A stretch of 64,000 nucleotides of DNA from assembly GCA_977017575.1 (NCBI GenBank), contig CDRNVI010000021.1, positions 682,001 through 746,000 on the forward strand. The letters are read 5' to 3'. The translations under genes and the position numbers were made by a program. The stretch is from Paramoeba atlantica. Taxonomy: Eukaryota > Protista > Discosea. Below, piece after piece: positions 9,794 through 43,830 of the stretch (positions within the stretch are counted from its first letter, which is position 1; the number at the start of each line of letters is the position of its first letter). The notes beneath the pieces are model-generated. The model saw only the letters and a list, made by a program, of their open reading frames with translations, was not told where the DNA came from and ran no database searches.

Positions 9794-10120
9794 GTCTTTA
9801 CGAATTCCCATTATACTTAAGAATTTCTCTTGCGCAGAAGAAATTGTAAAAACAGATTGTTCTAATAGTCTTATAGAAATGAACGGCTGCGGGTGGAACC
9901 TCGCCACCAGTATCCCCTCGAATGTATTCGACGACACAAAATGATACGAAATTTACTTTTCAACTTTACATGCTCTTCGCAATGTGTTTTTCCTATGTAC
10001 TAAAAGCAGTGCACTATCGCCATATCCCTACAACACCTTCCCATCCTTTGTTCCCATGAGCAACGCAACCACGCATCCCTCCGTCACTCCCCCCTGTAAT
10101 CCCCTTCCCTCCCACCTCCT

Positions 10121-11533
10121 ATGCTAGCCGAGGCCACGCTCTACACCGTTCTCTACGGCTCCAGCTACCGTTTCGCCTCCCTCTTCCTCTCTCGTCTTGC
10201 CCTCCCGGGCGTCCACCGTCTCCCCCTGCGTCACCTCTTCCATGCCATCTTCACCCTGGGCCTCTCCCTGTTCTTCCTTCTCCTGCTGGAGTGCGTGCAC
10301 TACGGCACCCCCACGCTTCGTCTCACACTCTGGAACCTTTCCTTGTTTCTGTGCTTCACACTTCTCGGGTTTGTCCTCCCGATGCGTACGCTGCGGGAGA
10401 TCACGGGCGACCGCTGGACGGGGTGGTCCCCGGGGAGGATACGCAACCTGTATCGAGCCCTCTCCCTGCTCGCGGTGGTGGGTTTTGTGTTCCACGGCTC
10501 CGGCGGGGGCTCCCGTCCAGCGCTTGTGTTTTTGACCCAAACGGTCAGTCGCGCGGCGGTTATGGTGCTGGCAAGTTTTGCCGGCCACAGTACCGTGGTT
10601 ACGTTTGGTCAGTATTTGCTGTCGCTGTATTTTCCTGCAGAGGCGATGGCGCAAGCGACGGAGCTAAAGAACGCTCAGACATGTATGGTAGCCGCGCTAG
10701 AGGAGAAGGAGAGATTGGTCGCTATGCAGGAGGCAGGGGTTTCAGATGGGAAGGCGCAGGTACACGGATTAACTTCTGCCGTCTCTTCATTGGGGTCAAA
10801 ACTTCACTCTGTGTTTCGATCGCCCTGGAATGAGGAAAGGAATTTTTCTAAAAGAGATTCCCATTCTGTCGTCGTCGACCTTACGGTTTTGCGGCAGGAG
10901 ATTGAAAGCTTGCGAAAGATGGAGCATTATCTGGCCCTTCAATCTCAGGAAATTGCAGAACGTATGGAACTGGTGCGTATGCGACAATCATGGGCCGGTA
11001 GAGTTCAACTAGGAATTTGTCTTGTCATTGGTATCATTGGCATTCTTAAAGTATTGGCAAGTTCTATTACTCTTCTCATTGGGTCGTATACTATGGCAAC
11101 AAGCGAGGCACCGGTACTCCGAATCGTGCGCATTTTATCTCTTTGGTCTGAATCGGATTATGGTTCAACTCTTTCCTTGTCCAAAATAAATGTAGCCTCA
11201 TTTGCTTTTCTCTTACTTCTACTGGGGACATCGTTTCGTTCGGTACTTTTGAGTATCTTAAAGTTTTTGACCTGGCACATGTCTTTTCTGCGCCCGTCCT
11301 CCATAGTACTTCTCATTTCTGAGTTTTTAGGACTGTACTGTTTAGGCACGGTTATACTCTCTCGCTCAGCTATACCAGAGCATCACCGGTTTTTTCTGGA
11401 ACGTGCCTTCGGCAACCACACGCAATATGCTGAGTATTACCGCTTGTTTGACATTTTTTTCGTCTTGAGTGCAGTCATTTCTTCTATTTTAAATGGTATA
11501 CACATTAATGAACACGTTTCTACATCCATTTAG
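10121..11533 (+). CDS. GPR89: Golgi pH regulator / GPR89 (GTG)-like multipass membrane protein
   Basis: Multiple hydrophobic helices around a central coiled loop; C-terminal YYRLFDIFFVLSAVISS matches the GPR89 FYHRWFDVIFLVSA motif. Confidence 0.85.
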   Translation: MLAEATLYTVLYGSSYRFASLFLSRLALPGVHRLPLRHLFHAIFTLGLSLFFLLLLECVHYGTPTLRLTLWNLSLFLCFTLLGFVLPMRTLREITGDRWTGWSPGRIRNLYRALSLLAVVGFVFHGSGGGSRPALVFLTQTVSRAAVMVLASFAGHSTVVTFGQYLLSLYFPAEAMAQATELKNAQTCMVAALEEKERLVAMQEAGVSDGKAQVHGLTSAVSSLGSKLHSVFRSPWNEERNFSKRDSHSVVVDLTVLRQEIESLRKMEHYLALQSQEIAERMELVRMRQSWAGRVQLGICLVIGIIGILKVLASSITLLIGSYTMATSEAPVLRIVRILSLWSESDYGSTLSLSKINVASFAFLLLLLGTSFRSVLLSILKFLTWHMSFLRPSSIVLLISEFLGLYCLGTVILSRSAIPEHHRFFLERAFGNHTQYAEYYRLFDIFFVLSAVISSILNGIHINEHVSTSI

Positions 11534-11802
11534 GAGAATGAATGTTTCTGGAAACGAAAACCTAGAAAAAATAAACGTGAAAAAATTGCTCCCGTCGGCT
11601 TTCACTGAAACCGGTGAAAGGCTAAATCTTCTCAGTATAGGAATCGAACATCTTTCCGTATATCTTTCTGTATATTGATACACTAATTTTTTATAGGAAA
11701 ACTGATCTTTTGAAGAGATCTTATGGCGTTTGTTCCCTGAGTAGTATGAAAAAAAGTATGAAATAGAATTTGTGTATCATTTTATGAAAGATCAAATGGA
11801 GC

Positions 11803-13569
11803 ATGAGTAGAAATTTGAAACGGATGCGAGCTACAAACGATGGTGAATTTTCAGTTTCTGCTGACGACTCACCTACTGTTCAAACAAAATCAAAAACGAA
11901 AATCGGGAAAAAGGCCAGAAACGAAACAGTTGTACATTACAAATCCAGGAACGTCTTACCATCAACGCAAGTAGGTAAAGTCGAAGTTTTACCAAAATAT
12001 GATTTTATCCACACGTCCGTATCGACGCGTGATTCGGAACCTAACGGTGGCCAGCGCACCACTCGGGTGACTCCTACAACCCCAACAAAGTCTACAGCTC
12101 CACCTGTTACAATTGACCTTACACATTCTGGGCGCAGTTGTGATCCTTCTCTCCAACGTACACCCCCAAAAGCTGTGCACAAGGGTCGTGCAACAGATGC
12201 TAAAATCATATCCCGCGTAAATCGCATTTCCGTAAGCCCGCAATCTACTCCAGTCCGGTCTCGTCCCAGCACTGCGGCTGGAACAAATCCCCGGAATATC
12301 TCAGTTCAACCTCCACCTCAATATAGGTCATCACGATCTGCCACAAGCCATATACCTGCTTTGCCGAGTTCTTCCCCTATCCGAGAATCCGTTCCTGTTT
12401 CCGTATCTCAGCGCTCCTCCCAACGCCTTGCCTCTGTGTCTGCCGCTCCCTCCCTTCCTTCTCGTCCTGTGACATCTTCTCCCCCCTCTCATGAACGCGC
12501 AAAATCAAAAGCCAGTTTAACGACCCAGGTAGACCAGGCAGAATTACAAACGCAAAAGAAACCCGAGAAAACGCCTTCGTCAACTTCTCGAAGAGGACCG
12601 GTGAATCACCCTGCTTCTTCTTCCTTCTCCTCTTCACGAGATCGTGCCCCTTTGCCCATCTCCTCTCCCCACCCCTCCAACCGCCCATCCATTTCATGTC
12701 CCCACATTCCCGAGGCAACTTCCGATCCTCCGGAGACCGACACCCACAGAACACCACTGCCCACGACCGGGACTGCGACCTACACCTATGTCTACCCCTC
12801 TGAACAAACTGAGGCAAATTTGAATTCAAACGATAGGGAAGAAAGAGAAGATGGAGAAACGCATACCCGTCCCTCTGACCATTCTTCCCGGTCTCGACGA
12901 CGCCCGAATCGTCGTCGTCGAGGGAACCGAAATCAACCCGAAACGTACCGTCGGTCTCGCTTTCATGAGATCTCTCCTCCAGCGTATGCGTATGCCACAG
13001 AGGAGACACCCAATTTTGATTTCAATCCGTTAGCCGGTGGGATTCTGTTTGGGATTCCAGACACAGGAGAGGAGGATTCCGACACGTTGGAGGGAAATGA
13101 ATTCAACGCCATGGTTCCGTTTATGCAGCAAATGATGCGTGTGTTGGGTTCTGGCGCCCCAAACTCACGTAGCCGTGGACGAGGTCGCGCGCAAGGGGTG
13201 TCGAATGCGAATCTACGCTCCATGTTGGATTCGTTGAATGTGCTAAATGAGGTGGTGCAGCAACGGGAAATGGGTCTCACAGGAGATATTGATAACTACT
13301 CCTATGAGCAGCTTCTGGAATTGGAAGATCGTATTGGGAAGGTAAACACAGGTGTGAAAGCGTCAGAATTAGAGTATCTGGAAAATCGCAAAGTGTTTGA
13401 TGGAGACGGAGAGGTGCGCTGTACTATTTGCTTGGAAGAATACAAAAAAGAGGTGGAACTAACTGTTCTTAAATGCGATCACACATTCCACATTTCATGC
13501 ATGGAGGCATGGGCAAAGGATAACAACTGTTGTCCTCTCTGTAAAACTGAAATTGTTAAACGAGAATGA
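11803..13569 (+). CDS. RING-H2 E3 ubiquitin ligase with long S/P/T-rich N-terminus
   Basis: DNYSYEQLLELEDRIGKVNTG followed by CTICLEEY...LKCDHTFHISCMEAW...CPLCK (C3H2C3). Confidence 0.92.
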   Translation: MSRNLKRMRATNDGEFSVSADDSPTVQTKSKTKIGKKARNETVVHYKSRNVLPSTQVGKVEVLPKYDFIHTSVSTRDSEPNGGQRTTRVTPTTPTKSTAPPVTIDLTHSGRSCDPSLQRTPPKAVHKGRATDAKIISRVNRISVSPQSTPVRSRPSTAAGTNPRNISVQPPPQYRSSRSATSHIPALPSSSPIRESVPVSVSQRSSQRLASVSAAPSLPSRPVTSSPPSHERAKSKASLTTQVDQAELQTQKKPEKTPSSTSRRGPVNHPASSSFSSSRDRAPLPISSPHPSNRPSISCPHIPEATSDPPETDTHRTPLPTTGTATYTYVYPSEQTEANLNSNDREEREDGETHTRPSDHSSRSRRRPNRRRRGNRNQPETYRRSRFHEISPPAYAYATEETPNFDFNPLAGGILFGIPDTGEEDSDTLEGNEFNAMVPFMQQMMRVLGSGAPNSRSRGRGRAQGVSNANLRSMLDSLNVLNEVVQQREMGLTGDIDNYSYEQLLELEDRIGKVNTGVKASELEYLENRKVFDGDGEVRCTICLEEYKKEVELTVLKCDHTFHISCMEAWAKDNNCCPLCKTEIVKRE

Positions 13570-18539: not shown

Positions 18540-21209
18540 ATGGCAGATGATTTTCTTCTTTTCGATAAATTGCTTGCTCAGCCGAAATCAAAAGTTTTTG
18601 AATCCAAGTCAATAAGAAAAATAAAATTTCGGGGCGTCTCAGACACTATTGTTTGCTCGAAAGAAGATTCGGGAAAAAATGCAGATTCCGGAAAGTTCAC
18701 TCTAAACGCTGTGGAAGCACTATCTCGAAGCAGAAGGAATGAAGAAATTGAAGTTGAAGCAAAGCGTAGAATGATACTGTTTAGCAAGAAAGCAAATACC
18801 CATTTTTCAAACATTAAGAAGGTGAGGCACCTCTTGCGTGAGGCGGGAGAGTATGAGTCTATTCCTGACGAAACCTTGGATCCTAGCACGCTTCGCAAAG
18901 TTTTTGATGTACCGAACCATTATGATCACATCTTATTACCAGAAGTAGCCGATAACTACCCTTTTCTCCGTCCATACCAACATCGCGGAGTGCAGTGGAT
19001 GTTTCAAAAATATCAACGAGGTGACTTGGGGCTAATTTTGGGCGACGACATGGGCATGGGGAAGACAGCCCAAGTATGTTGCTTTTTACACTTGATCAAT
19101 GATCCTAAATTTTGTAAATTTGCCGCGCCAAGTATCGTCGTGGCTCCCAATGTAACCTTAGCGAATTGGATGCGAGAACTAGCTAGGTGGTCTCCAACTC
19201 TAAAAGTGGTCAAATATCACGGAAGCAAAGACCATCGGAAGCAGATGCGTTCCTCTTCTTTTATTGGGCAAGGCGAGTACGACGTTATGCTAACAACAGC
19301 TACGGTATTGTGTAATGATAAACCATACTTTATTGACAAAATTCATTGGCGGTGTGTCGTAGTGGATGAGGCTCACAGCATTAAAACGTCTAGCTCGCAA
19401 ATTACGCAGACGTGTCGAAAGATTACTTCGCCCTTTCGCGTTGCACTGACTGGAACACCTGTACAAAATCATATGCGCGAATTGTGGTGTTTGGCAGCCT
19501 TTCTTCATTGCAGTCTTCTTCAGGAGGATTTGGTGATATCTGATTCTACAGAATATGAAACATCGGTGGAAGCCACTGGAGTCGAGGCTTATGGGCTATC
19601 CGAGTCCGTCTCAGATTTTCTATCTTGTTTCATGCCGTATGTAATGCTACGCCGCACTAAATCTGAAACTCTCCGTGATCTTCCTCGAAAGCGCATTCAA
19701 ACCGTTTTTCTGGAGCCCACCCCGGAACAAAGACTTCTTTGTCATAAAATATGCTCTGATGCAGTACAGAGAAAAGAAATCACGTCCTCCTACATGCACT
19801 TGCGTAAAGTTGCCTGTCATCCATATCTTATTGATTTGCTATACAGCGGAAAAAGTCAGCTTTGCAGTCCTCTTCACGACAACAGCGTATCATTTTCATC
19901 TCTCTCATCGAATATACCGAACGAAAGTCTTCCCACGGATGATTCTGCACACATGAGACTGCACCGAGCAGGAGTTCCTGCTTTTAACCTCGACACCCTC
20001 AGCTCTCCCTCTGCAAAACTGCTCAAACTCGAGGCATTACTTCCGTCGCTACGCGATGAGGGTCATCGCGTCGTCATTTTTTCGTCATTTCGCACCATGT
20101 TAGATCTTGTCGAGGTGTTGTGTGTGCTTCGTAGCTATCCCTATTGCCGTCTTGATGGTCTCACTCCGTATTCCCGACGGGATTTGGACATGCAGGTATT
20201 CAACCGACCCCATTCCTCGATTTTTGCCTACCTTGTCACCACTACTACCGGAGGTGTGGGAATTTCTCTGGTCGGGGCAGACACCGCTATTCTTCTAGAC
20301 CCTCATTTCAACCCCACAGTGGATGAACAGGCTATCGATCGGATTCACCGACTAGGGCAAACTCGTGACGTCCAAGTGTATCGATTTCTGCTTCAGGACA
20401 GTGTGGAAGAACGTATCAATGTTGTCTCAAGTGATAAAAGTCGCCTGGGATCGGAAGTGCTTCGTGATGGCGTGGAACACGGTGTCGAACGCAGCTCGTA
20501 TTGTGCAAGTATTGAAGATTTGGAGGCGATGGGTTGTAAGAATGCGAGAAAGGAGATTTCCTCCGAGGTACTGCGATGCGTAGACAAGTGGATGCAGAAA
20601 CTTCGAAGTCAGAGCGGCGAGTTCGACTTGGAGCTTAATCTGTCTGAATCGGTCCAAGACGATACCGGACTTATGGAACAAGGCATAGGAGAAATGGTGG
20701 ATGATACCGATGGTAGAGTCATTGGTTCTAAAAAATTACGATTGAATTGCGGTTCACTGACAAGCAGAAATGCGTTCCGATATAGCTCCACATGTTTTAT
20801 TTGTCACGAGTATGTGAGTCCATGTGACGCTCTCCCTTGTAATTATTGTCCTAAGAACTATCATCTTTCTTGTATCGAGGAAATACAGACAGTACGGAAA
20901 CCGTTTTCGTGTCCACGACATTTCTGTCATGTTTGTCAAAAATCGTGCCCGGCAAGTGGTGGAGTGTTATTTCTTTGTATATCATGCACTCACTCTTACT
21001 GCTTTGAGCACTTAAGTCCTTCCCAGTGTGAGTCACAGGATTCCAGCGCACATTCCACACGGACTTCAAAACAAGATGACGGTTTCTGTTTTCTTCCGGA
21101 CACGCGTATCTCCAATACCTATCCGGAACGAATTTCTGAAAATGTTCCGCTGCGAAATTCTTTATTGTACATACGCTGCACAGAGTGCAGGGCAGAGGAT
21201 ATTTTTTGA
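18540..21209 (+). CDS. SNF2-family chromatin-remodelling ATPase with C-terminal PHD-like fingers
   Basis: LGDDMGMGKT, VVDEAH, ALTGTPVQN..ELW, DPHFNP..DEQAIDRIHRLGQ...VQVYRF; C-terminal CFIC..CNYCPKNYHLSC..CPRHFCHVC..C.SC..SYC.EH. Confidence 0.95.
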   Translation: MADDFLLFDKLLAQPKSKVFESKSIRKIKFRGVSDTIVCSKEDSGKNADSGKFTLNAVEALSRSRRNEEIEVEAKRRMILFSKKANTHFSNIKKVRHLLREAGEYESIPDETLDPSTLRKVFDVPNHYDHILLPEVADNYPFLRPYQHRGVQWMFQKYQRGDLGLILGDDMGMGKTAQVCCFLHLINDPKFCKFAAPSIVVAPNVTLANWMRELARWSPTLKVVKYHGSKDHRKQMRSSSFIGQGEYDVMLTTATVLCNDKPYFIDKIHWRCVVVDEAHSIKTSSSQITQTCRKITSPFRVALTGTPVQNHMRELWCLAAFLHCSLLQEDLVISDSTEYETSVEATGVEAYGLSESVSDFLSCFMPYVMLRRTKSETLRDLPRKRIQTVFLEPTPEQRLLCHKICSDAVQRKEITSSYMHLRKVACHPYLIDLLYSGKSQLCSPLHDNSVSFSSLSSNIPNESLPTDDSAHMRLHRAGVPAFNLDTLSSPSAKLLKLEALLPSLRDEGHRVVIFSSFRTMLDLVEVLCVLRSYPYCRLDGLTPYSRRDLDMQVFNRPHSSIFAYLVTTTTGGVGISLVGADTAILLDPHFNPTVDEQAIDRIHRLGQTRDVQVYRFLLQDSVEERINVVSSDKSRLGSEVLRDGVEHGVERSSYCASIEDLEAMGCKNARKEISSEVLRCVDKWMQKLRSQSGEFDLELNLSESVQDDTGLMEQGIGEMVDDTDGRVIGSKKLRLNCGSLTSRNAFRYSSTCFICHEYVSPCDALPCNYCPKNYHLSCIEEIQTVRKPFSCPRHFCHVCQKSCPASGGVLFLCISCTHSYCFEHLSPSQCESQDSSAHSTRTSKQDDGFCFLPDTRISNTYPERISENVPLRNSLLYIRCTECRAEDIF

Positions 21210-21527: not shown

Positions 21528-23045
21528 ATGAAACGAAGGAATAAAAAGGTTTCCGAAAAACAAATTGCACTGTCGAAAAAACCTAAGCGTGCCTTCAAGA
21601 CGTCATCCCCCTTATCAACAGAACCTTTAACCTCATGCGAACCCTCAGAGAATACGGTGGAAAGCAGCACTCCCCCCTGCAGCTTTCAACAACTTGGTTT
21701 GCATGCCTGGATCTGTCGTGTCTGCACTCACGTAGGCCTACTCAAGCCCACTCCGGTGCAGCAGAGGGCCATTCCACAGATCCTACGTGGGGATAGGTGT
21801 GTGATGGCGTGTGCCCCGACAGGAACAGGAAAAACAGCGGCTTATGTATTACCTCTTCTCCAGGCGCTCTCCTGTGACATGTATGGCATCTATGGTTTGG
21901 TGCTATCCCCGACACGCGAGCTTGCGATCCAGATTGCGGACCAGTTTCACTTATTCGGGACTCCCATGGGGGTACGCGTAGGGCTGGTGATTGGAGGCAT
22001 TAAACAGAAACTGCAATTTAACGCAGTGGAGACCCGGGCGCATTTTTTAATTGGTACCCCAGGGCGTATGCACTATTTACTGACCGAGTCCCCCTACGCC
22101 AACGTCGCGACCCGATATTTACGTTTCGTGGTATTTGACGAGGCCGATAAGTTACTCACCCTCACCGAAAACGCAGGAGAGGTACACCAACTCATCTCCT
22201 TTCTACAAACCGAACGTCCAACCCACGAACTCCGCTACCTCCTCTTCTCCGCTACTCTTAATCACACCGAGGCCGCCACACAATTAGGTCTTCTAGAGGC
22301 CCCAACCACCTCCCCTTCCCCCGATCTCCCGAAATCGCAACCCCCCAACCTCCCTACCCCTTCTAACTTCCCCAACCTCCCTACCCCTTCTAACTCCCCC
22401 AGCCCCCCCGCCCCCTCCCTCCCCCCCACCCTCTCCGAGCAGTTCCTCCTCGTCCCCAGCCACGTCAAGCTCATCCACCTCGCGCTCCTGCTCTCCCCCC
22501 CGGCCTGCCCCTGGCCCCGCGCCATGGTCTTTGCCAACTCCCGTCGCCGGGCCGCGGTCGTCCGCCTCACGCTCCAGCTCCTCGGGCTCTCCGTGTGCGG
22601 GATGCACGGGCTGCAGACCCAGCAGCAGCGCACGGACGCGCTCGCGCTGTTCGCGCTGGGGGCGTCGCGGGTGCTGGTGTGCACGGACGTGTTCGCCCGG
22701 GGGCTGGACATCCCGGGGGTCGACGTGGTGGTCCACTACGACTTCCCGGTGTCCGCGGTGCGGTATGTGCACCGCGCGGGGCGCACCGCGAGGGCGGGGA
22801 GGGGGGGGCTGTCGCTGGTGATGGTCACGGAGAGGGATGTGGGGATGTTTGAGAGGCTGGAGAGGGGGCTGGGGAGGCGGATGGGGAAGAGGGAGGGGGG
22901 AGGGGAGGAGCGGGTGTTGAGGGTGATGGATACGGTGACGCAGGCGTTGTGGGAGGCGGAGGGGATTGTGAGGAGGGAGTATCCGGTGGGGGGAGGGGGT
23001 GGGGGGAGGGATAAGGGTGGGGGAGGTGATGAAGTGGATGCGTGA
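21528..23045 (+). CDS. DBP8: DEAD-box RNA helicase, DDX49/Dbp8-like
   Basis: PTPVQ, APTGTGKT, LSCDMYGIYGLVLSPTRELAIQIADQF, DEAD, SAT, ARGLDIP, YVHRAGRTARAGR. Confidence 0.9.
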   Translation: MKRRNKKVSEKQIALSKKPKRAFKTSSPLSTEPLTSCEPSENTVESSTPPCSFQQLGLHAWICRVCTHVGLLKPTPVQQRAIPQILRGDRCVMACAPTGTGKTAAYVLPLLQALSCDMYGIYGLVLSPTRELAIQIADQFHLFGTPMGVRVGLVIGGIKQKLQFNAVETRAHFLIGTPGRMHYLLTESPYANVATRYLRFVVFDEADKLLTLTENAGEVHQLISFLQTERPTHELRYLLFSATLNHTEAATQLGLLEAPTTSPSPDLPKSQPPNLPTPSNFPNLPTPSNSPSPPAPSLPPTLSEQFLLVPSHVKLIHLALLLSPPACPWPRAMVFANSRRRAAVVRLTLQLLGLSVCGMHGLQTQQQRTDALALFALGASRVLVCTDVFARGLDIPGVDVVVHYDFPVSAVRYVHRAGRTARAGRGGLSLVMVTERDVGMFERLERGLGRRMGKREGGGEERVLRVMDTVTQALWEAEGIVRREYPVGGGGGGRDKGGGGDEVDA

Positions 23046-23262
23046 GATGAAGTAGAAGGATGAAGAGGAAATCATGTGAATGTTTTTACACGTACACAAC
23101 ATTCAAAACGTACGGACGTACGTTTGGAATTGATGATGTGGAATCATACATACATGAATATGTGCATACATTATGTTGTTTTACGGCATACTTGTGTTCG
23201 CTTTTGCTATCATTTTCTGTATCCATTTTCTATCTTTCTTCTTCACAATTTTATTCAAACTA

Positions 23263-26007
23263 ATGCCGCCGAAACCAAGCACTGGAGCTTCCAAATCAAC
23301 TAAAGGGAAGGAGAGTTCGAAGAGCGCTGGAAAGACTAAAAATGTGCCTCCTTCGCTTCTGGCTATGAAGGCTCAGATTGAAAAGCAGAAGCAAGCAGAA
23401 GCCAAACGAATGGCGGAGGAAGAGGCCGATCAAAAAAGAGTGGAAGAGGAAGAAAAACGTATAGCGTTGGAGGAACAGAAGAAAGAAGAAGAACGAAAAC
23501 GGAAGAAAGCTGCTGCGAAAACTATTACCTCCGCTGATAGGAAACTGTTGGAAAAACAGAAGAAATTAGAAGAACTAAGACACGCTGGGCATTTTATTCC
23601 TAAAGTTGCGGATGAGGAAAATGGAAATGATAGTGGAGGAAAAATGCAACGCTCCAACATGCGCCAGCTCTATAGTTCTCGTCGAAAAACAAATGTATCA
23701 AAACCTAGTGCTCCGCCACGGTGCGAAAATGAAGATGAAAAAATCAAAAGTAGAGCGTCGAACTTGGAGAGCCGCGGCTCGGAGAACGTAGGGTTGGAAA
23801 ATGAAGTTGGGCCACAGAATTTGGATTCTCTTTATAAAGATTTTGAAACTATCGTTGATCGAGGAGATCGCGATTTGTTTCATGACGCATCTGTCGAATC
23901 AGATGTCTGTGCCTCTTGGGAAGATTACTTAGAACACTCTGAACGGTTAGCAGCACGTCGCGTTTTAGCTACGCTTCATCCTGAGGTGGGGGTGATTCGA
24001 ATCGCTGTCAATGAAGAGCAAGCTAAAGAATGGAAATCTCTCATACAAAAGCACGAGAAGTCATTAGAAAACATTTCTGCAAAAGTATCGAGAACTCAAC
24101 TACCTTCTTCCAATGTGCCTTTAAAAAATGATGTCATCATTCATCCTACTTCGCTACGCTCGCCTATAATCTGTATCCTTGGTCACGTCGATGCCGGGAA
24201 AACATCCTTACTTGATTGCCTCCGACGTTCAAAAGTACAATCTGGCGAAGCCGGAGGAATAACGCAGCAAATTGGTGCTACGTTCTTTCCAATAGAACAT
24301 GTAGTACGACGTACCGCGTCATTAATTGAGGCCAACAAATTTCGAGGCGCAGATTCCAAAAAGGCTCTTATGCCGTCGGAGAGTAAGCTTCCGGGTTTCT
24401 TAATGATTGATACTCCTGGTCACTCATGCTTTACACACTTACGCTCACGCGGGTCCTCTCTCTGCGATATTGCCATCCTTCTCGTAGATCTCACGAAAGG
24501 TTTAGAAGCTCAGACAAAGGAAAGCTTAGACCTACTCCGACGTCGGAAGTGTCCTTTCATTGTGGTAATTAACAAAGTGGATCGGATGTATGACTGGGTG
24601 CCAACCTTGGATGCGCCATTTTCTGTTTGTCTTAGCAAGCAAAAAAAATACGTACACTCCGAGTTCTTATCCAGGGTTCAAACGGTTAAAACTCAGCTTA
24701 TGGAAGAAGGTTTCAACTCCGAGCTATTTTATGAAAATACTGACTTACGAAAAACGGTTTCCTTGGTTCCGGTCTCCGCTACCACGGGGGAAGGTATTCC
24801 TGATCTTTTATGTTTGTTGACCCAAATCGTGGAAAACTTTATGGAAAGCAAAGTAACTCTTCACGAAAAGGGCAGCGTGGACTGTACTTTGCTGGAGGTG
24901 AAAAAAACTGAGGGCTTTGGAACTACTCTAGATGTTATCCTTGTGAATGGTGCGTTGCACATTGGAGATACTATTGTCGTCTGCGGGCTAAACGGGCCTA
25001 TTGTTACAACGATTCGAAATCTATTAAGTCCGGCGCCTTGTACGGAGCTTCGTCTGCGTGGGGATTTTGTGACCCATCAAAGCGTACATGCCGCCAAAGG
25101 TGTGAAAATTGCTGCTCATGATATTGAAGATGCTGTTGCAGGGACTCCGCTGTTTGTGTACAACGACAAAGATCCCTCGCCCTCTCTGGAAGATCTAAAA
25201 TCCGATGTCATGAAAGATGTGACCTCTTTGAACTCCCGTCTTGAAGCCTCGGGAAGAGGTATTACCTTGCAAGCTTCTACACTTGGATCTTTAGAGGCTC
25301 TGCTTTCTTTTTTTGAGGAAAAGAAAGTTCCCGTGGCTTGCATTGCTTTAGGTCCTATACATAAGCGACACATGATTCACTGCCAAGTATCATTGGAACG
25401 TGATCCCAAAAACGCGCTTCTTCTTGCCTTCGACGTTCCCATATCGAAAGAAGCACAAGAGATTGCCGATTTTCACAAAATTCCGATTTTTTCATCGAAC
25501 GTGATATACACTCTATTCGATCGTTACATCGCATATGTAAAGCAAAAAGAAGAGCAGGCAAAAGATCGCAACCAAAATCTTGTTGTTTTTCCAGTAAGTT
25601 TTCGGTATTTACAGACGTTTCGAGCTGCCGACCCCATTGTTTTGGGGGTAGAGGTACTACGAGGCCAACTTCGTTCCGGAACTCCTATTGGAATATTGCC
25701 TAAAAATAACGCTGACAGTTCTACAAACAGCTTATCGCCTTCTTTTCAAACAATTGGAACGGTAGTTAGCGTTCAAAGTGAACACAAAGAAATACCAATC
25801 AGCCGTGCGGGGTCGAAAGTTGCAATTAAAATACAAACAAAGGATTTGGGCGCAGTCGTAGGAAGGCACGTACCCACAGATTGCATTTTTCATAGTGCGC
25901 TGTCTCGCAAAAGTATTGATGCTCTGAAGGAATCCTTTCGTGGCGATATGGCGGATGATGACTGGCGTCTGGTTGTGGAACTGAAAAGGATGCAGAGTGT
26001 CCTTTAA
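23263..26007 (+). CDS. EIF5B: Translation initiation factor eIF5B
   Basis: LRSPIICILGHVDAGKT, GEAGGITQQIGATFFP, IDTPGH, NKVDR, QASTLGSLEALL. First ATG at 23263. Confidence 0.97.
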   Translation: MPPKPSTGASKSTKGKESSKSAGKTKNVPPSLLAMKAQIEKQKQAEAKRMAEEEADQKRVEEEEKRIALEEQKKEEERKRKKAAAKTITSADRKLLEKQKKLEELRHAGHFIPKVADEENGNDSGGKMQRSNMRQLYSSRRKTNVSKPSAPPRCENEDEKIKSRASNLESRGSENVGLENEVGPQNLDSLYKDFETIVDRGDRDLFHDASVESDVCASWEDYLEHSERLAARRVLATLHPEVGVIRIAVNEEQAKEWKSLIQKHEKSLENISAKVSRTQLPSSNVPLKNDVIIHPTSLRSPIICILGHVDAGKTSLLDCLRRSKVQSGEAGGITQQIGATFFPIEHVVRRTASLIEANKFRGADSKKALMPSESKLPGFLMIDTPGHSCFTHLRSRGSSLCDIAILLVDLTKGLEAQTKESLDLLRRRKCPFIVVINKVDRMYDWVPTLDAPFSVCLSKQKKYVHSEFLSRVQTVKTQLMEEGFNSELFYENTDLRKTVSLVPVSATTGEGIPDLLCLLTQIVENFMESKVTLHEKGSVDCTLLEVKKTEGFGTTLDVILVNGALHIGDTIVVCGLNGPIVTTIRNLLSPAPCTELRLRGDFVTHQSVHAAKGVKIAAHDIEDAVAGTPLFVYNDKDPSPSLEDLKSDVMKDVTSLNSRLEASGRGITLQASTLGSLEALLSFFEEKKVPVACIALGPIHKRHMIHCQVSLERDPKNALLLAFDVPISKEAQEIADFHKIPIFSSNVIYTLFDRYIAYVKQKEEQAKDRNQNLVVFPVSFRYLQTFRAADPIVLGVEVLRGQLRSGTPIGILPKNNADSSTNSLSPSFQTIGTVVSVQSEHKEIPISRAGSKVAIKIQTKDLGAVVGRHVPTDCIFHSALSRKSIDALKESFRGDMADDDWRLVVELKRMQSVL

Positions 26008-29200: not shown

Positions 29201-29826
29201 TAGAGGGGTGGATTCAGCATTATCAAGTGGTGCAGGAGGAAAATTTGGTGTACTTTTTGTATCAGTGTCAGGTGAATTGTTACGGCGCGTTGATTATGGA
29301 TCCGATTCAGGAACAGACCAGCGCGATTGTACATGATCTGGGGCAGCGGATGGTGTATTATATTCCCACGGTAAACCAAAATGAAGGTTCCCGAGCGCAG
29401 CATCCCCATCCCTATGTACACACTGTGTATACTGATACGATACAAACGCTGCGGGAGTCGGAAGCAACACGAAACGCGACAATCTCGACGCTTGTTCGGG
29501 TGCTTGCGGATTACGCGCAAAGTATCGGTACGTATCAGGAAGGGGTGTCCTGTCCCGAGCGTGTGGTGTACGTACGAAAGTTCTTCTTTGACTTTGTAAA
29601 TGAAGACCCGCGGTGGTACATGATGCGACTCTCAAACGGACGTACACAAATCTCACATCCGAACGAATATGTACAAATTCGGTGGATCTCACAGTCCCTG
29701 TCGGGGATGGATGCGGTACCGAAGTATCGTGTACGTGCGGGTAGCCCCCCTCAGCTGTTTCAGGATATTGAATACTTTGCATCGATCAGGGAAACTCTGG
29801 AAAAATTCGAGGAAATTGAAGCCTAG
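26206..29826 (+). CDS. KKT2: KKT2/KKT3-like kinetochore kinase (polo-related): kinase, central Zn domain, divergent polo boxes
   Basis: N-terminal kinase (LGEGAFG, VAVK, HRDLKPGN, DFG, APE); central CPRKH...WCDACH...YHCKCGYDLCKTC; C-terminal VYVRKF...MRLSNGRTQI polo-box-like segment. This three-part layout is that of kinetoplastid KKT2/KKT3. Confidence 0.75.
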   Translation: MATSRASRSVSIENAIVPCTVETEDITHLEIRIPDGPDTMVVRTDMMLGEGAFGVVLGGTLEYAGEKTEVAVKCSHKKVRGKDLDRLRDEVRIMKMMKHPHIVRFIHAAVHMDYVYIVMERCLKKSLQDVIREYTLSMEDVLRLGHQIVDAIAYIHSRHCIHRDLKPGNFVFDSEGNIKITDFGLSSSVSTLETPRKTVAGTYSYMAPELMKQVLHHQKTRTMAPGFRYNTEIDVYSLGVVLFFLATRASPYWNETKGRGKDPDVLCKAVSEGRWEWPRGFHADIDFMKLVESMLQVDGTRRPDLRAVQRHAVWLKRPKHPSVAFLKAIGVRNFEREFHKLRTDEDVERTLYQNMRRSYDTCIDVQQRELKIRSLLVHEYDLKVEQWRRQRLDLLQKASLKVAPSREASTRSVRSNLAFAAPSARRSFSTRRSPSLESDWGLAEGSARYSFRQSTLSWHPESKRTTTTDAPESRKGAEGKGSPSSSSRKRTRPSPSPARGRRTPSFWLDGPPAKWEGSSPQFDSRRHVVRCPRKHVMQVLDKFPKLNETGTDDYGWGFWCDACHKEVATLTKTDNVFYHCKCGYDLCKTCGVRASTLHPKVTTVSGAANITVKPPLQASPTRGAAKGSTKPLPPIPSSTPTPSPPKARAAQQLAAKLLPKTHTPPSQKDRASPRRVGRSPLPRSRIAAQLDANIPTPPTDVTSSSPPHPAKRVPRASTSGATTASRSRTNKPPLPTTSTTPNSPLLPSSHPMQTRSRNETPTHPTNLPTTRPTFAAEIHDNYPTTSLPTPHRVSIPPGSVSPFFTGSLPEPLNVHPNNSLRTTTATTTNTAAAVTPSLHTQHPDAISSHHLPLSPSRITAPHEVIAPEFPERVSSTVASLSLTGSPSAESSSRAAAAVSAAAVSSRSRKGQPSSPLAAAFTPASPVGSKPPAGEHGTPSSKLRKGGPGRGRREGEEVEKGESHGMTRRSQSSSSSALTRAASAVSSNAGLIIPQEISRLEGWIQHYQVVQEENLVYFLYQCQVNCYGALIMDPIQEQTSAIVHDLGQRMVYYIPTVNQNEGSRAQHPHPYVHTVYTDTIQTLRESEATRNATISTLVRVLADYAQSIGTYQEGVSCPERVVYVRKFFFDFVNEDPRWYMMRLSNGRTQISHPNEYVQIRWISQSLSGMDAVPKYRVRAGSPPQLFQDIEYFASIRETLEKFEEIEA

Positions 29827-30269
29827 TTGATTCGTCTGCTTTTGTATCCTATTTTTTGGATCTTAACAAAGTAGTCTTAGTGGTCGTTAGATAGCAGGGT
29901 TTACGGTTTAGATACACATAACTAGTGAGCGGAACTCGACAGTTTGAATAGCTAATTCTGGTTTTTAAGAGTTTTTAGTAATCCGTTGTAGATTTACTTT
30001 TTATGTGAATCACTCATCACGTAGTTCGAATATGATTTTATAGTCATAATCTTTAGGGGTGTTGCATAAATTCACGTCTATTGAGTTACGTAATCTTATA
30101 CAAACCTCAAAGTTAGGTAAAGGTTTAGTCTTGAATATGAGTTCGTTGCCAACTGTCATGAAATAGTTTTTTGACAGCACTAGTTTTGATAGATTCGGAT
30201 TTTCCTCTTTCTTTAAGTTTTTACGAAAAAGCATGTTGACATGAAATAGCACTGCACAGTAAGTCTAGC

Positions 30270-31163
30270 ATGGAGACCAACATTTCCTTATCTGTCAGCA
30301 AGACTTCATCTACGAGTAATTCTACGCAACGTAGCAAGACGCATACTCGAAACACAACCAGTGGTACAACATCCGACTACTCGCATATTTTTCAAACTCT
30401 TTTAGCACATCAAATTCCTTTTGTCACTCAAAGCGCTGTAAATCTTTTAGGTGGGAAGGTAAAGAAGACTCAACTACAAGTCTTGCTGGATCGGTGGATT
30501 CAAAACAAAAAGATACATTCAAAAACGTATCATAATGGGAAAACGGTAGTCTACTATCCAAAATGGGATCATAAATCAATGACAGATGATCAAGAACATG
30601 TTCAGGAAATGTCCATGAGTCCTGGAACGAAAAATGACAAATCAGAAGTTTTTTATCACAAAGGTACTTCAAATCAAAAACGCGCGTTTTCTAACTCTCC
30701 TGAAAAGGAGAAGTTCTCTGATCAAGATGAACATCATTCAAAAGCGTCTTCCCTTGAGTCTCTTCTATCTCAGGAAAAGGAAATGTCGAAGAAGCACTTA
30801 AGCAGGCAGAAAATATTTGAACAGATGCAAACTGAACGAAGTAAAATTTCCTGTATGAGCAGTTTTAGACAGCTAGAAGAGAGAATCCAAGACGCGGAAA
30901 GGAAAATTTGTGAAGCTAAGGAAAGAATAGATACTCTCAAACAACATAGCGGCACTTTGAGTAGCACAGAAGACATTGAAAAAGCAGTCAACAGATATGC
31001 AAATATGCGTAGCTTATGGGTAGAGCGACGTTCCATGGTGGTTGATGCTATACACTCTATTGCGGGTGATATGCGCTCTAGTTCTGAAGTTATAACAGAG
31101 TTTGGAATTGAAACTGATGAATCAGCAGGAGTTTCTCTTTCAAAATTTCCTGTGAATTTTTAA
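30270..31163 (+). CDS. HOP2: Meiotic recombination protein Hop2 (TBPIP/PSMC3IP)-like
   Basis: N-terminal winged-helix-like KTQL..LLD......KI.SKTY.....VYY, a coiled coil, and C-terminal W..RRSM..D......EFGIETDE. Confidence 0.8.
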   Translation: METNISLSVSKTSSTSNSTQRSKTHTRNTTSGTTSDYSHIFQTLLAHQIPFVTQSAVNLLGGKVKKTQLQVLLDRWIQNKKIHSKTYHNGKTVVYYPKWDHKSMTDDQEHVQEMSMSPGTKNDKSEVFYHKGTSNQKRAFSNSPEKEKFSDQDEHHSKASSLESLLSQEKEMSKKHLSRQKIFEQMQTERSKISCMSSFRQLEERIQDAERKICEAKERIDTLKQHSGTLSSTEDIEKAVNRYANMRSLWVERRSMVVDAIHSIAGDMRSSSEVITEFGIETDESAGVSLSKFPVNF

Positions 31164-31412
31164 CCTAAAAATTCATTGTACGTATTTTCGTCACGCTAGC
31201 TCTACAGTTGTTTGCTACTTTTAACTTGCCATTTTTTTGTGTATTTTCGTCTTTCTTATTTGCGATTAGTTGTACGATTTTACAACTCAACTTTGATTAC
31301 ATTGTATTTTTTAGTAATGACCAATACGTTTTCAATATTTTGTGCTCATTGCTCTATATTTCCGCTCTTGATTTGGTAACGATAAAAAGTAAACGATATT
31401 TAGTAACGATAA

Positions 31413-32132
31413 ATGGATTACCAGTTCGCAGAACGTCGTCCCTCCAAAGTTCGTGGTCTCAATGTACCGCAGGAAATGGATCTTGAACGGCTCATAAGTG
31501 GTTTACACACGCGACATGAGAGTTGGAGTTCAGAGATCCCAGCTTGTAAGTGGGATGGGATAAAATGCAACTCAGATGAGAAAGTTACAGAAATACAGTG
31601 GAACAGTCGAACATTGAACGGAATCATGAATTTCGTGTACATACCAAGCTCTACTACGAGCTTCGATATTGAAGAAAACCGTATATCGGGAGAAGCGATA
31701 CTGAGCGATCTTTTCCCATTAGTAAAGTTGACTGATTTGTTCTTAGGTGGAAACCTCTTTACAGGAAATCCGGATCTTACCAAGTTGCCAAAATTTTTGA
31801 CTGCCGCATGGATGGAGGGGAACAAATTGTCTGGTGAGATATGTCTTACGCAGCTGCCTGTTGGTTTATTGTATTTGGACGTTAGTGACAATTTATTGAC
31901 AGGGAAACTTGATTTGGGAGCACTTCCGAACACTCTAAAAGGTTTGTACTTTAGTCAAAATGAATTCAAAGGAAATATAGATTTGTCATCTCTTCCAGAA
32001 AATCTTGACGGCGTATCATTCGATAACAACAAATTGTTAGAAGGTACAATAAACGTGAATCAACTTCCTCGCATGGTAAGGCAAAATGTAAAGGTGTATA
32101 TTTCTAATACCAAGATCGTTGTTACGAAATAG
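31413..32132 (+). CDS. Short leucine-rich repeat protein, same family as 3907 and 17370
   Basis: RPSKVRGLNVPQEMDL, IPACKWDGIKCN cap, about six xNxxxGxxxLxxLP repeats. Confidence 0.9.
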   Translation: MDYQFAERRPSKVRGLNVPQEMDLERLISGLHTRHESWSSEIPACKWDGIKCNSDEKVTEIQWNSRTLNGIMNFVYIPSSTTSFDIEENRISGEAILSDLFPLVKLTDLFLGGNLFTGNPDLTKLPKFLTAAWMEGNKLSGEICLTQLPVGLLYLDVSDNLLTGKLDLGALPNTLKGLYFSQNEFKGNIDLSSLPENLDGVSFDNNKLLEGTINVNQLPRMVRQNVKVYISNTKIVVTK

Positions 32133-32391
32133 GTGGGACGACAATATTTTCAAAACCTGAACGAGGAACAAAAGTAGTCGAAAGGCAATCTGAGCTCCGT
32201 TTTCCTTGCATTCCCCCTCTTTTCATCATTTTTCTCAACCACACCCCTCACCCCATCCCCCCTATCTCTCCATCCATTTTTCCACAACCCCAACCATTTC
32301 AGAAACGGTTCTTTCCTTTACAGATTTCCTTCTTTCTCTCACTTCTTTCTTTTGTCTCCTTCCCTTCCCTCCCCTCCCCTCCCTGCTCTCC

Positions 32392-33537
32392 ATGTCCCTC
32401 TGGGTCGACACCCAACACCCCCGCACGCTCGACCAGCTCGACCTCCACCCCTCCCTCACCCCACGGCTCCGTGCGATCGCCCACAGCCGTGACTTCCCCC
32501 ACCTGCTGTTCACCGGTCCCCCCGGCAGCGGCAAACGCACCCGTGTCAGCGCCCTCCTCCGTGAGCTGTTCGACCCCGACCACAGCGCCCCTGGCCGTTT
32601 AGACAAACTCAAGCTCGAGCACAAATCGGTGAAAGTCACCGAGAGTAAAACCGTGGAGGTCACGGCGCTCACCTCCCCGTACCACACCGAGATGAATCTG
32701 TCCGAACTAGGGAGTTATGACCGCGCGGTGGTGATGACCACGTTAAAGGAGATTGCGCAGTCGGCCCCGATAGTACGGGCCGGGGAAGGGGGTGTAGGGG
32801 GAGGTGAGAGGGAAAAACAACAAGGGGGGATGTTATCGCCTTCGTTAAGCTCCCCACCGCGTTTTCGTGTGTTAGTGTTGCATGAGGTGGATCGAATGAC
32901 ACGACCGGCGCAACAAGCGTTGCGTCGTACAATGGAGAAATGTGTGACGACGTGTCGGTTGGTTTTAGTTGCGGAGAGTACGGGACGGTTGATTGCACCG
33001 ATTCGAAGTCGGTGTTTGGAGATTCGTGTGCCGTGCCCGCAGGTGGCGCAGATTTCGTTGTTGCTGGATACGGTGTTGAAAAAGGAGGGGGAGGCGAGTG
33101 CAGGTCTAACGACGGAACTGCGAGAGGAGATTTTGCAGCTTGCAAATGGGAATGTGCGACGGTCGTTGCTGTTGTTGGAGTCTGCGTGGAAAAATAATCG
33201 TAAGATTCATATGCCCACGTGGCAGACTACTGTGCGTGATATTGCAACGTGTATTGTACGGGAACAGACGCCTAAGAAACTGCATGAAGTTCGTGGCATG
33301 TTTTACGATTTGTTGGGGTCGTGCATTCCCCCGGGATTAGTTTTTCAAGAGCTTCTTACTGCATTGCTAAAGCTTGCTAATTTTCCAGAGTCGAAAAGCA
33401 AATTGGTAGAACATGCCGCCACATACGATCATTCACTTCGTCTTGGATCCAAGCCTATTTTTCATCTTGAGGCATTTGCGGCGCATGCAATGGCTGTTTT
33501 TAGGGTGGAAGAAATTACAAAGAAGGCGAAGCAGTGA
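32392..33537 (+). CDS. RFC3: Replication factor C small subunit (human RFC3 / yeast Rfc5 type)
   Basis: MSLWVD..PRTLD.L, FPHLLFTGPPGSGKRTR, LHEVDRMTRPAQQALRRTMEK, PIRSRCL, GSKPIFHLEAF. ATG at 32392. Confidence 0.95.
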   Translation: MSLWVDTQHPRTLDQLDLHPSLTPRLRAIAHSRDFPHLLFTGPPGSGKRTRVSALLRELFDPDHSAPGRLDKLKLEHKSVKVTESKTVEVTALTSPYHTEMNLSELGSYDRAVVMTTLKEIAQSAPIVRAGEGGVGGGEREKQQGGMLSPSLSSPPRFRVLVLHEVDRMTRPAQQALRRTMEKCVTTCRLVLVAESTGRLIAPIRSRCLEIRVPCPQVAQISLLLDTVLKKEGEASAGLTTELREEILQLANGNVRRSLLLLESAWKNNRKIHMPTWQTTVRDIATCIVREQTPKKLHEVRGMFYDLLGSCIPPGLVFQELLTALLKLANFPESKSKLVEHAATYDHSLRLGSKPIFHLEAFAAHAMAVFRVEEITKKAKQ

Positions 33538-35414: not shown

Positions 35415-35423
35415 ACTTCAAAT

Positions 35424-41571: not shown

Positions 41572-42186
41572 GCCAACTAGGTTCTTCGTCGTAACATTTT
41601 TATCTTTTGAGCATATTTTTCGAATTACAAATTCAGTTCAGTTTGTGCGTTAATTTTATAAATACATTCTTGATTCCACCGAAGTAGTCAATCTCATAGA
41701 CACATGTGGCCAGAGCATCCATGAGCATATGTTTAATTGGTAAGTGTGTTGTACAAATGAGATTCTTTTATAAATTGCTGCTTCTTATGAGTTGACCTTG
41801 AAATGAAAGTTTTCACACGATTAATGCTGTCATTTTTTGAATCATGACATGAGACTAGAAATGTCAAAGTATTGGAAATGCTTGAATTAAATGTTTGAAT
41901 CTTGATATTTTTTTATTGGTTGGGTTTATCATCACCAGCAAGAGGCACCCTACTTGAAGATATTAAACAAAGTGTGCGCTTAATGTACTTTCTGAACACA
42001 CGGCTACTTTGAAATAGTTATCAAACGCTCCACTCATTCCCCTGCCACGCTTTTCTTTCCCTAAGGATCCCTAAGGATGATAAATTTCTTATTTCTCATC
42101 CTTTCGTTCTCCTCTCTCTCCCTCTTCTACCTTTCCTCTCTCTCTCTTTCACCTCTCTCCCCACCCCATCCCCCTCTTCCCACCCC

Positions 42187-43830
42187 ATGCCCCCCTCCAA
42201 CCTCTACCTCTGGGGTGCCGTCGACTGGACCTCCCCCACCGAAACCACCCCCGACCCCCCCTCCCGCATCCTCGACTTCCCCCTCCACCTCCCCCTACGC
42301 GCCCCCCTCCCCGGCACCGTGCTCTCCATCGCCTGCGGGTCCCGGTTCGCCCTCCTCCTCCTCACCAACGGCACCGTCTGCGGGCTCGGCAACAACCAGC
42401 ACGGCCAGCTCGGGCTCCCCCCCTCCAGGCCCGTTGTGCCGTACCCCACGGAACTCCCCATCGGGCCCCCCGGGACACAGATCCGGGAGATCGCGGCGGG
42501 TCAGCTCCACGCGCTCGCACTCACGGCCGAGGGGGTGGTGTACAGCACCGGGGGGAATGCCGCGCGACAGCTGGGGAACACCCACGCGGGCTGTCGTCAC
42601 CGGTGGACGGTGGTGGGGATAGGGGAGGGGGGGAGGGAGAGTGTACGTGCGGTGGCGGCGGGTCGGGACTCCTCCTATGGGGTTACGACCACCGGGAAGG
42701 TGTACTCGTGGGGGGGAAACCGACAGGGGTGTTTGGGTCATGGTGAGGTGTATGGTGGCGGCAAAGGGGGGATGCAGGACGCGAGGGAGGGGGAGAAGTT
42801 CACCCCTGTGGAGCCTTCTCCTCGAGTGGTGGAATGGTTTCTGGACCGTGGAGTGCGTGTGGCGCGGATAGCGGCTGGGGCGTCTCATTTCGTGGCGATG
42901 ACAAGTGCGGGGGAGGTGTATACCTGTGGGGAGGGGGCGTTCGGTCGTCTTGGAGTCGGTAACACCGAGAATGCATGGGAGCCTGTCCATGTGACGACGT
43001 TCCCGAAGCGAAAGTACCCTGAACGCGTGGTGGGAGTTGCCGCGGGTGGGGACGTGACGTTCGTGCTACGGGAGTGTGCGGTGCTGGGTGTGATGGTCTA
43101 CCTCTTTGGGCGCATCGGGTCAGAGTTTGAAGGCTACTATTCGCCGGAAATATTTCCCGAGTTGTGCGGTCGCGAGGTTTGTGGGGTCTGTGCCGGGAAA
43201 ACTCATCAAATTGCGTGGACACGTAGTGGAGAGCTTTTCGGTTGGGGTAAGAACAGCAAATGTCCGACAAATGGTATGATTGGCGAAATTTTACATAAAG
43301 TATCACATCCGCATTCCTTTTCTCTTCTTCATAATTATCAAGTGATTGCCGCCGGATGTGGGGCGCACTACACCCTTATAGCCGTTGAACAATCCGACAA
43401 GGTCTCCCGAGAAATCGTCGTACCTTTAACCAATCGCTATTTTCAAAGAAACTTAAACTTCATCCCGTTAAGTAAAGTACCTTTTGAGAAAGCAGCCGCA
43501 GAATATCGCATTTTCATGCTTGGAGAGAAAGAAGGTTTGGCATACAATGAAACACTACCTCACCCACAGGAAGAGATGGAAAGAAACGAGGGATATGAAA
43601 AGAAAGGAGCACATGCATTGTCTGTAGGCTCCAAGGTCCGGGTCTGGGTACAGGACATTGAGGCGTTAGGCACCATTATTCGCCTACCTGGGCAAGAACA
43701 GGCAAACCCTCATGAATACGAAATTCACTGGCTTCGTGAAGATTGGGTAGATGAGGTCGTGACGCTGCCTTCAGACGATGAAACTGGGGATGTGGCTAAT
43801 ACAAATCGTTGGTTACATGGGTGGACATAA
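42187..43830 (+). CDS. RCC1/BLIP-II repeat beta-propeller protein
   Basis: IACGSRFALLL..G.VCGLGNNQHGQLG, IAAGQLHALALT.EG.VYSTG, VAAGRDSS...G.VYSWG.N..GCLG, IAAGASH...GEVYTCGEG.FGRLG. Confidence 0.92.
   Translation: MPPSNLYLWGAVDWTSPTETTPDPPSRILDFPLHLPLRAPLPGTVLSIACGSRFALLLLTNGTVCGLGNNQHGQLGLPPSRPVVPYPTELPIGPPGTQIREIAAGQLHALALTAEGVVYSTGGNAARQLGNTHAGCRHRWTVVGIGEGGRESVRAVAAGRDSSYGVTTTGKVYSWGGNRQGCLGHGEVYGGGKGGMQDAREGEKFTPVEPSPRVVEWFLDRGVRVARIAAGASHFVAMTSAGEVYTCGEGAFGRLGVGNTENAWEPVHVTTFPKRKYPERVVGVAAGGDVTFVLRECAVLGVMVYLFGRIGSEFEGYYSPEIFPELCGREVCGVCAGKTHQIAWTRSGELFGWGKNSKCPTNGMIGEILHKVSHPHSFSLLHNYQVIAAGCGAHYTLIAVEQSDKVSREIVVPLTNRYFQRNLNFIPLSKVPFEKAAAEYRIFMLGEKEGLAYNETLPHPQEEMERNEGYEKKGAHALSVGSKVRVWVQDIEALGTIIRLPGQEQANPHEYEIHWLREDWVDEVVTLPSDDETGDVANTNRWLHGWT

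Follow-up and report, generated by a model that had tools for sequence, protein, structure and literature searches.

Which process can render one part of a gene C-rich and the adjoining part G-rich on the same strand is the question raised by a 64,000-nt stretch of the Paramoeba atlantica assembly GCA_977017575.1 (contig CDRNVI010000021.1, positions 682,001 to 746,000 of the forward strand), the whole of which is referred to as the window. Positions 1-44 kb of the window hold about 20 genes, all on the plus strand and separated by short spacers, in a one-way array, and positions 44-64 kb are repeat-rich. Within the array, five GC-rich islands were found in which the top strand changes abruptly from C-rich to G-rich, and these islands may be footprints of replication initiation. 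An initial annotation of the same DNA had described five such inversions inside genes and had proposed fixed replication origins as their cause. All five were recovered at the places described, whereas the proposed cause finds only part of its expected signs, as is discussed below.

Strand-skew islands in the gene array

In 200-bp windows, the top-strand GC skew at the five sites runs at -0.5 to -0.84 and then at +0.3 to +0.76, with a GC content of 0.60-0.75 in between, and the flip from C-rich to G-rich takes about 200 bp. With 300-bp half-windows, the C-to-G switch scores of the five islands amount to 115, 200, 135, 128 and 182, in contrast to a top score of 92 over 200 block shuffles preserving the 2-kb composition, which lies below all five. 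The sharp V-shaped minima of the cumulative G-C curve that the initial annotation suggested looking for were found within the window at all five centres, namely at positions 10380, 22592, 28997, 32688 and 42524. In the pooled profile, the GC skew is -0.6 at -400 bp, zero at the centre and +0.44 at +300 bp, and it is gone by +/-900 bp, while the pooled GC content is 0.62-0.66 from -300 to +200 bp compared with 0.43 in the background. The islands, together with one marginal site, are as follows.

Island 1, 10020 to 10994, unstranded: C arm from 10020 to about 10380 and G arm from 10381 to about 10994, in a GPR89/ABA_GPCR-like gene with its ATG at 10121.
Possible sixth island (marginal), 12200 to 13456, unstranded: C-rich at 12200-13028 and G-rich at 13029-13456, in a RING-finger gene.
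Island 3 (the strongest), 22143 to 23186, unstranded: 3' half of the DBP8/DDX49 helicase gene, with the C arm ending at 22592.
Island 4, 28090 to 29355, unstranded: KKT2/KKT3-like protein kinase gene, in the linker and the C-terminal part, with the C arm (28090-28997) long and the G arm short.
Island 5, 32185 to 33296, unstranded: RFC small-subunit gene with its ATG at 32392, centre at 32688 and G arm to about 33296.
Island 6, 41976 to 43283, unstranded: RCC1-like gene with its ATG at 42187, centre at 42524 and G arm to about 43283.

The uniform polarity noted in the initial annotation also held. All strong G-to-C switches in the window are outer edges of the same islands, so that the strong dipoles share one polarity, although with n=5 a polarity test within the window alone is weak (p about 0.03-0.06). 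This polarity is not a side effect of gene orientation, because C-then-G reads identically on both strands; intrinsically, the strand going 5' to 3' away from the centre is the G-rich one. The outward strand is purine-rich as well, with a purine fraction of 0.28-0.44 on the left versus 0.53-0.65 on the right. The centres had been described as rich in both GC and CpG, of which the high GC content was confirmed and the CpG enrichment was not, since C and G are balanced there and the ratio of observed to expected CpG is about 1 (0.67-1.3 in the islands, 1.05 in the background). A CpG island kept by escape from methylation was rejected as well, given that this ratio is about 1 throughout the window and no CpG-depleted background exists.

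The sites lie 2.6-10 kb apart, about 5.5 kb on average, which gives five or six sites per 33 kb. Each of the 16 canonical G-quadruplex (G4) motifs of the 44-kb gene region is situated inside an island; left arms contain 10 of them, all on the reverse strand, and right arms the other 6, all on the forward strand. Beyond composition, no common sequence motif was found at the centres, a comparison of low power (n=6), and no tRNA or Rfam RNA gene anchoring the islands was found in the searched window. Three centres fall +259 to +337 bp from an ATG, and one edge lies in a spacer at four of the six sites (the marginal one counted). This geometry is compatible with anchoring at gene ends, at a rough p of about 0.03-0.09 by our own estimate, and does not discriminate between models.

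The site at 12200-13456 beats the shuffles only with half-windows of h=500 (151 versus 120), and its C-rich part overlaps a Ser/Pro/Thr-rich linker of the RING-finger gene. At four-fold degenerate sites it passes from C 0.31 and G 0.15 to G 0.36 and C 0.18; its third-position score of 27, compared with up to 26 in ordinary genes, makes it marginal at synonymous sites. Faint C-then-G tendencies were also seen in two other genes, at 5500-6000 (skew -0.36, then GC up to 0.58) and at 19500-20700 (skew from -0.15 to +0.38). Neither tendency is conspicuous at third codon positions; they could be nascent or decaying islands.

Two features of the repeat-rich part are recorded here for completeness. 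A G/T-rich block at 48230-48949 (GC 0.56) carries a 239-aa open reading frame in which a 'GWPGGHFF(R/S)'-like unit recurs; lacking a C-rich partner arm ahead of it, the block resembles a tandem repeat and not a skew island. At 52950-56710, long C runs (minus-strand G4 motifs) form five clusters with a period of about 930 bp; these clusters are unrelated to the gene islands and constitute the sole other G4-dense places in the window.

Bias at silent and non-coding sites

We were interested in whether the skew is imposed by the encoded proteins. Four-fold degenerate sites were therefore pooled within +/-500 bp of the centres, with the following base composition.

Left arms (n=526): A 0.12, C 0.56, G 0.14, T 0.18.
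Right arms (n=544): A 0.16, C 0.16, G 0.54, T 0.15.
Background: A 0.26, C 0.21, G 0.20, T 0.33.

The pooled four-fold G skew is hence -0.59 on the left and +0.54 on the right, corresponding to C:G ratios of about 4:1 and 1:3.4, and four-fold GC reaches 0.93-0.94 in the islands. Each island carries the bias on both sides: Island 1 has C 0.56 left and G 0.42 right, Island 4 has C 0.52 and G 0.06 left and G 0.45 right, and Island 5 has C 0.68 left and G 0.56 right. The values are C 0.70 left and G 0.81 right in Island 3, where the GC content rises up to 0.75 and the skew passes from -0.78 to +0.76, and C 0.80 left and G 0.51 right in Island 6, with a GC content of up to 0.74.

The arms are not confined to coding sequence. 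The C arm of Island 1 begins in the 5' untranslated region (UTR), that of Island 5 in the spacer and 5' UTR, and the C/T-rich arm of Island 6 upstream of the ATG, with the respective centres lying 259, 296 and 337 bp downstream of the start codons. The 150 bp upstream of these three ATGs (10121, 32392 and 42187) have a C content of 0.41-0.47 compared with 0.11-0.23 in the remaining 17 genes; the upstream non-coding stretch of Island 1 contains C 0.50 and G 0.07, and the upstream 150 bp of Island 5 contain C 0.47 and G 0.04. On the other side, the G arm of Island 3 crosses the stop codon (23045) into the spacer preceding an eIF5B-type gene, and no other upstream region of the array is as rich in G or as poor in pyrimidines as this spacer. 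Conserved domains are traversed too: the Helicase_C domain (aa 330-424) straddles the centre of Island 3, the AAA+ domain of RFC that of Island 5 and the RCC1-like domain that of Island 6, with third positions switching from C to G inside them. Protein sequence is not the cause of the skew, because the bias is present at four-fold and non-coding sites. The initial annotation had claimed an extension of the bias into DNA upstream of ATGs, a third-position switch within conserved domains and a persistence at synonymous and non-coding sites, and it was correct on all three.

Upstream of the RCC1-like gene, positions 42030-42186 contain a C/T tract of about 110 nt, in which, by eye, no AG occurs from 42076 to the ATG. 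The trans-splice acceptor is therefore probably an AG at about 42064-42076, and the 5' UTR would be unusually pyrimidine-rich.

Comparison with a syntenic relative

The affiliation of the DNA was approached through the DBP8-type helicase (21528-23045). Its closest match, with 57% identity, is a protein on a 69-kb metagenome contig from ENA, followed by a transcript of the free-living prokinetoplastid isolate PhF-6 (56%), a JGI protein (53%) and Trypanosoma brucei (42%). Judged by this ranking, the DNA probably belongs with kinetoplastids outside the trypanosomatids, near Prokinetoplastina.

A 40.2-kb part of a relative's contig, rebuilt from L001-L003 and syntenic with the window, carries orthologues of four island genes, those for DBP8, the KKT2/KKT3-like kinase, RFC and the RCC1-like protein. 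No island was found in these 40.2 kb, the four orthologous genes included: no 300-bp window reaches a GC content of at least 0.58, the maximum being 0.49, and the orthologous segments of equal length are AT-rich. The top switch score of the relative is 57, in contrast to 115-200 in the window, and it falls in the kinase linker, a segment with mild C skew in either species. In this Ser/Thr/Pro-rich linker (L001 13900-14600, corresponding to 28090-28900 of the window), the four-fold sites of the relative have C 0.33 and G 0.12, and part of the C-richness in the left arm of Island 4 is accordingly ancestral and does not stem from the island process. The initial annotation had asked whether orthologous genes keep the switch position; in the four genes of this relative there is no island to be kept. 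The comparison indicates that the islands are derived, lineage-specific overprints that also shift residues.

Synteny is inexact between 21528-33537 of the window and L001 10001-18742. In the relative, the DBP8 gene is directly followed by the kinase gene, whereas the window has an eIF5B-type GTPase gene (23173-26007) between the two; likewise, a leucine-rich-repeat gene (31413-32132) precedes RFC in the window, and no gene was called there in the relative.

At codons whose residue is identical in both species, the third positions of left arms have changed from A to C in 26 of 54 cases, from T to C in 56 of 78 and from G to C in 14 of 38. Those of right arms have changed from A to G in 46 of 75, from T to G in 28 of 60 and from C to G in 18 of 60. 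The shifts thus start from every other base, and therefore transversions and exchanges between C and G are involved. T>G, C>G and T>C, the classes that are also in excess at human constitutive origins (PMC9645720), are enriched and invert at the centre, although these counts, taken at third positions of conserved residues against a distant relative, are saturated and reflect composition and not measured rates. Among differing residues, Pro, Thr, Ala and His have become commoner in left arms at the expense of Lys, Asn and Ile, as have Gly, Val, Arg and Ala in right arms at the expense of Ile and Lys.

The proteins are thus remodelled, as the initial annotation held, although its Pro-rich inserts turned out to be mostly replacements. 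The Pro-rich segment of DBP8 is a same-length swap of a variable linker, with 0 inserted residues in the left arm compared with the relative. The claimed Gly-rich insertions are real, being present as short additions in the right arms of RFC and the RCC1-like protein compared with their orthologues. None of the other kinetoplastid DBP8 homologues with long linkers has the Pro-then-Gly pattern.

Origin of the islands

The observations to be explained are that the bias affects neutral sites, is symmetric about the centre, extends over a short distance and is specific to the lineage, and that the G4 motifs are partitioned by strand; replication initiation is the process that we tentatively propose for them. 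At a rough probability of 0.4, the islands would be footprints of recurrent DNA-synthesis initiation at fixed replication start sites. A lineage-specific, strand-asymmetric and GC-enriching substitution process would start at fixed points and proceed outward for about 0.5 kb both ways; on either side, the strand going 5' to 3' away from the centre would gain G from A, T and C, and its complement would gain C. Purifying selection would keep the proteins working, leaving the effect to appear at silent sites, at tolerant residues and as small Gly/Pro additions. The source may be repeated initiation at fixed start sites with an error-prone first stretch of synthesis. The lack of islands in the relative fits a turnover of initiation sites. 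A further proposition, put slightly less firmly, is that the genome carries a dense set of self-mutating DNA-synthesis initiation sites, about one per 5 kb and in about one gene in four here, which would have saturated silent sites and rewritten conserved proteins.

For the fixed origins of the initial annotation, there is published precedent, and the G skew and the G4 partition agree with them, whereas the following points weigh against replication initiation. At four-fold sites, the T skew does not rise across the centre: it is +0.21 left and -0.03 right, compared with a background of +0.13, and the change runs opposite to expectation (p=0.03). The AT skew is not inverted together with the GC skew in the pooled profile, which corrects the initial annotation, where C/A-rich left and G/T-rich right was given as the polarity expected at a fixed origin. 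In contrast, the origin skews of Leishmania and human both have a T component (PMC7511235; PMC9645720). No replicon-scale sawtooth was detected between islands, the GC skew at third codon positions being +0.082 in first and +0.047 in second inter-island halves (p=0.35) and the AT skew at these positions being the same in both halves (p=0.95); the 3-kb island flanks have about zero skew. Ordinary leading/lagging replication skew was rejected in the same analysis, since neither a step nor a sawtooth extends past +/-900 bp. Moreover, five or six sites in 33 kb are very dense for efficient origins, and all of them are inside coding sequence. Mapped initiation sites are AT-rich in L. major, and those of T. 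brucei are intergenic, with a slight A/G enrichment upstream and T/C downstream (PMC12890776, PMC13179062). The skew amplitude of +/-0.6-0.8 also exceeds by a wide margin that of any origin footprint in the literature.

Another account, which we regard as doubtful, invokes stable hotspots of recombination or DNA breakage, in meiosis or mitosis, at which GC-biased gene conversion (gBGC) would lift the GC content and strand-specific resection and fill-in would add the mirror skew. gBGC is the best-established neutral force for GC above 0.9 at third codon positions in kilobase patches regardless of coding, with amino-acid shifts, and the expected GC gain at silent and non-coding sites is indeed observed. 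Hotspots in compact genomes would also suit the density of about one per 5.5 kb, the gene-end positions and the absence from the relative, and strand-asymmetric mutation is documented around human double-strand break hotspots (PMC7615360). However, gBGC alone is strand-symmetric and blind to exchanges between C and G, whereas these exchanges are strand-biased in the islands and the strand-symmetric bias from A/T to G/C was not found. At human hotspots, C and A are the bases lost from the retained 3' single strand (PMC7615360), which would make the inward strand G-rich, opposite to the islands, and hotspots tied to nucleosome-free spacers would be expected to centre on spacers and not 300-450 bp inside a gene. 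A simple model of G.T-mismatch repair was dropped, as reasoning by hand suggests that it would give a GC bias and no net strand skew. An undescribed, lineage-specific process targeted to chromatin-defined points, such as repair linked to base J or G4s, or a self-reinforcing loop of G4s and translesion synthesis, appears unlikely. In its favour, no known process fits together the extreme amplitude, the asymmetry restricted to G and C, the flat T skew, the gene-end geometry and the absence from the relative, and the centres share no motif; yet no positive evidence points to such a pathway, and it is less economical than origins, which already cover polarity, G4 partition, GC rise and scale.

The islands might instead mark bidirectional transcription-initiation or R-loop zones within the gene array, like GC-skewed CpG-island promoters, with the G-rich non-template strand running outward. 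Polarity and arms of about 0.5 kb match skewed bidirectional promoters, a purine-rich outward strand favours RNA:DNA hybrids, and trypanosomatids are reported to have GT-rich elements at bidirectional start regions as well as starts inside polycistronic clusters. We nevertheless find this improbable. Mutation associated with transcription or R-loops is AT-ward (C deamination) and cannot lift the GC content from 0.43 to 0.75; therefore, selection for the element would be needed, and a selected element would be expected to be conserved or to lie in spacers, whereas the relative lacks all four orthologous islands. In addition, L. major transcription-start sites marked by acetylated histone H3 (AcH3) only have no G-skew change and carry G4s on both strands at the centre (PMC7511235). 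The least credible account, to which we give hardly any weight, takes the islands as by-products of low-complexity Pro- and Gly-rich segments or of a selected RNA hairpin between C arm and G arm. Left arms do encode Pro/Ser/Thr-rich and right arms Gly-rich stretches, the kinase linker is C-skewed in the relative too, and the RNA of Island 3 folds better than shuffles (z = -3.3). On the other hand, the bias is strongest at four-fold and non-coding sites, it traverses conserved catalytic domains, and the equal-length orthologous segments of the relative are AT-rich. Composition driven by protein is refuted for the five strong islands by their synonymous and non-coding sites. The RNA of Island 6 folds worse than shuffles (z = +2.1), and with folding being this inconsistent a selected arm-to-arm hairpin was rejected. 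True palindromes or inverted repeats were likewise rejected, the arms sharing just short poly-C to poly-G matches with 70-93% complementarity.

Should the islands be replication or break sites, a map of origins or breaks could be read directly from sequence at the level of single loci. They would represent a natural extreme of the model in which origins mutate themselves into GC-rich, G4-flanked sites, and the most extreme natural case in which codon usage and protein sequence give way to a local DNA transaction. They would also bear on the disputed definition of origins in this lineage, with one per chromosome by marker frequency analysis (MFA-seq) versus thousands by the sequencing of short nascent strands (SNS-seq) or DNAscent in Leishmania. 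More generally, the islands would then bear on the co-evolution of origins, G4s and GC islands, and in practice island-bearing genes will mislead analyses of codon usage, of nonsynonymous to synonymous substitution (dN/dS) and of phylogeny.

Comparison with known systems

Under any reading, the islands belong with known local skew footprints as an extreme variant located inside genes, and no description of the pattern was found in the literature. The initial annotation knew of nothing comparable in kinetoplastids, which has to be corrected for its milder form. The early-S MFA-seq origins of L. major, likewise a kinetoplastid, show a highly localised change from negative to positive G and T skew, even between co-directional units (Damasceno et al., 2020, PMC7511235), and their G4s lie on the reverse strand upstream and on the forward strand downstream, irrespective of transcription direction (PMC7511235). 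These loci, marked by AcH3, base J and KKT1, resemble the islands in the local inversion of G skew and in the strand-partitioned G4s. They differ in that there is one per chromosome, at transcription-unit boundaries, with a modest amplitude in 1-kb windows and a changing T skew, and in that neither a GC island nor a rewriting of coding sequence is reported for them; the islands are intragenic, about 5.5 kb apart, and reach a skew of +/-0.8 and a GC content of 75%.

At human constitutive origins, mutagenesis coupled to initiation is limited to about 1-4 kb and independent of transcription (Murat, Guilbaud and Sale, 2022, PMC9645720). T>G, C>G and T>C occur there in excess, their strand bias inverts at the origin, and a simulation of this mutagenesis leads to a local GC rise, skews, CpG islands and G4s (PMC9645720). 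These origins and the human S-jumps (Touchon et al., 2005, as far as cited in PMC5137433) share with the islands the scale of about 1-4 kb, the GC rise with G4s and a frequent location in gene bodies. The human signal is subtle and statistical, with an AT-skew component and a replicon-scale gradient across N-domains, whereas the islands are visible at single loci, with nearly saturated silent sites and no long-range component.

The gBGC hotspots described as 'runaway GC' in gerbils (PMC7403616) are similar in their extreme GC at third codon positions over kilobases, in pushing conserved proteins toward GC-rich codons and in being lineage-specific. Such gBGC peaks are strand-symmetric, however, and neither C-only and G-only sides nor biased exchanges between C and G are predicted for them. 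Vertebrates reportedly possess GC-skewed, R-loop-forming bidirectional CpG-island promoters, as described by Ginno et al. in 2012 and 2013. Such skewed promoters (related: PMC2817419) have, like the islands, a centre rich in GC that spans about 1 kb, and their skew is negative on the upstream and positive on the downstream side. Vertebrate CpG islands stand out from a CpG-depleted, methylated background, in contrast to a ratio of observed to expected CpG of about 1 everywhere here, and the islands of the window lie inside the coding sequence of a one-way array with an amplitude several-fold larger.

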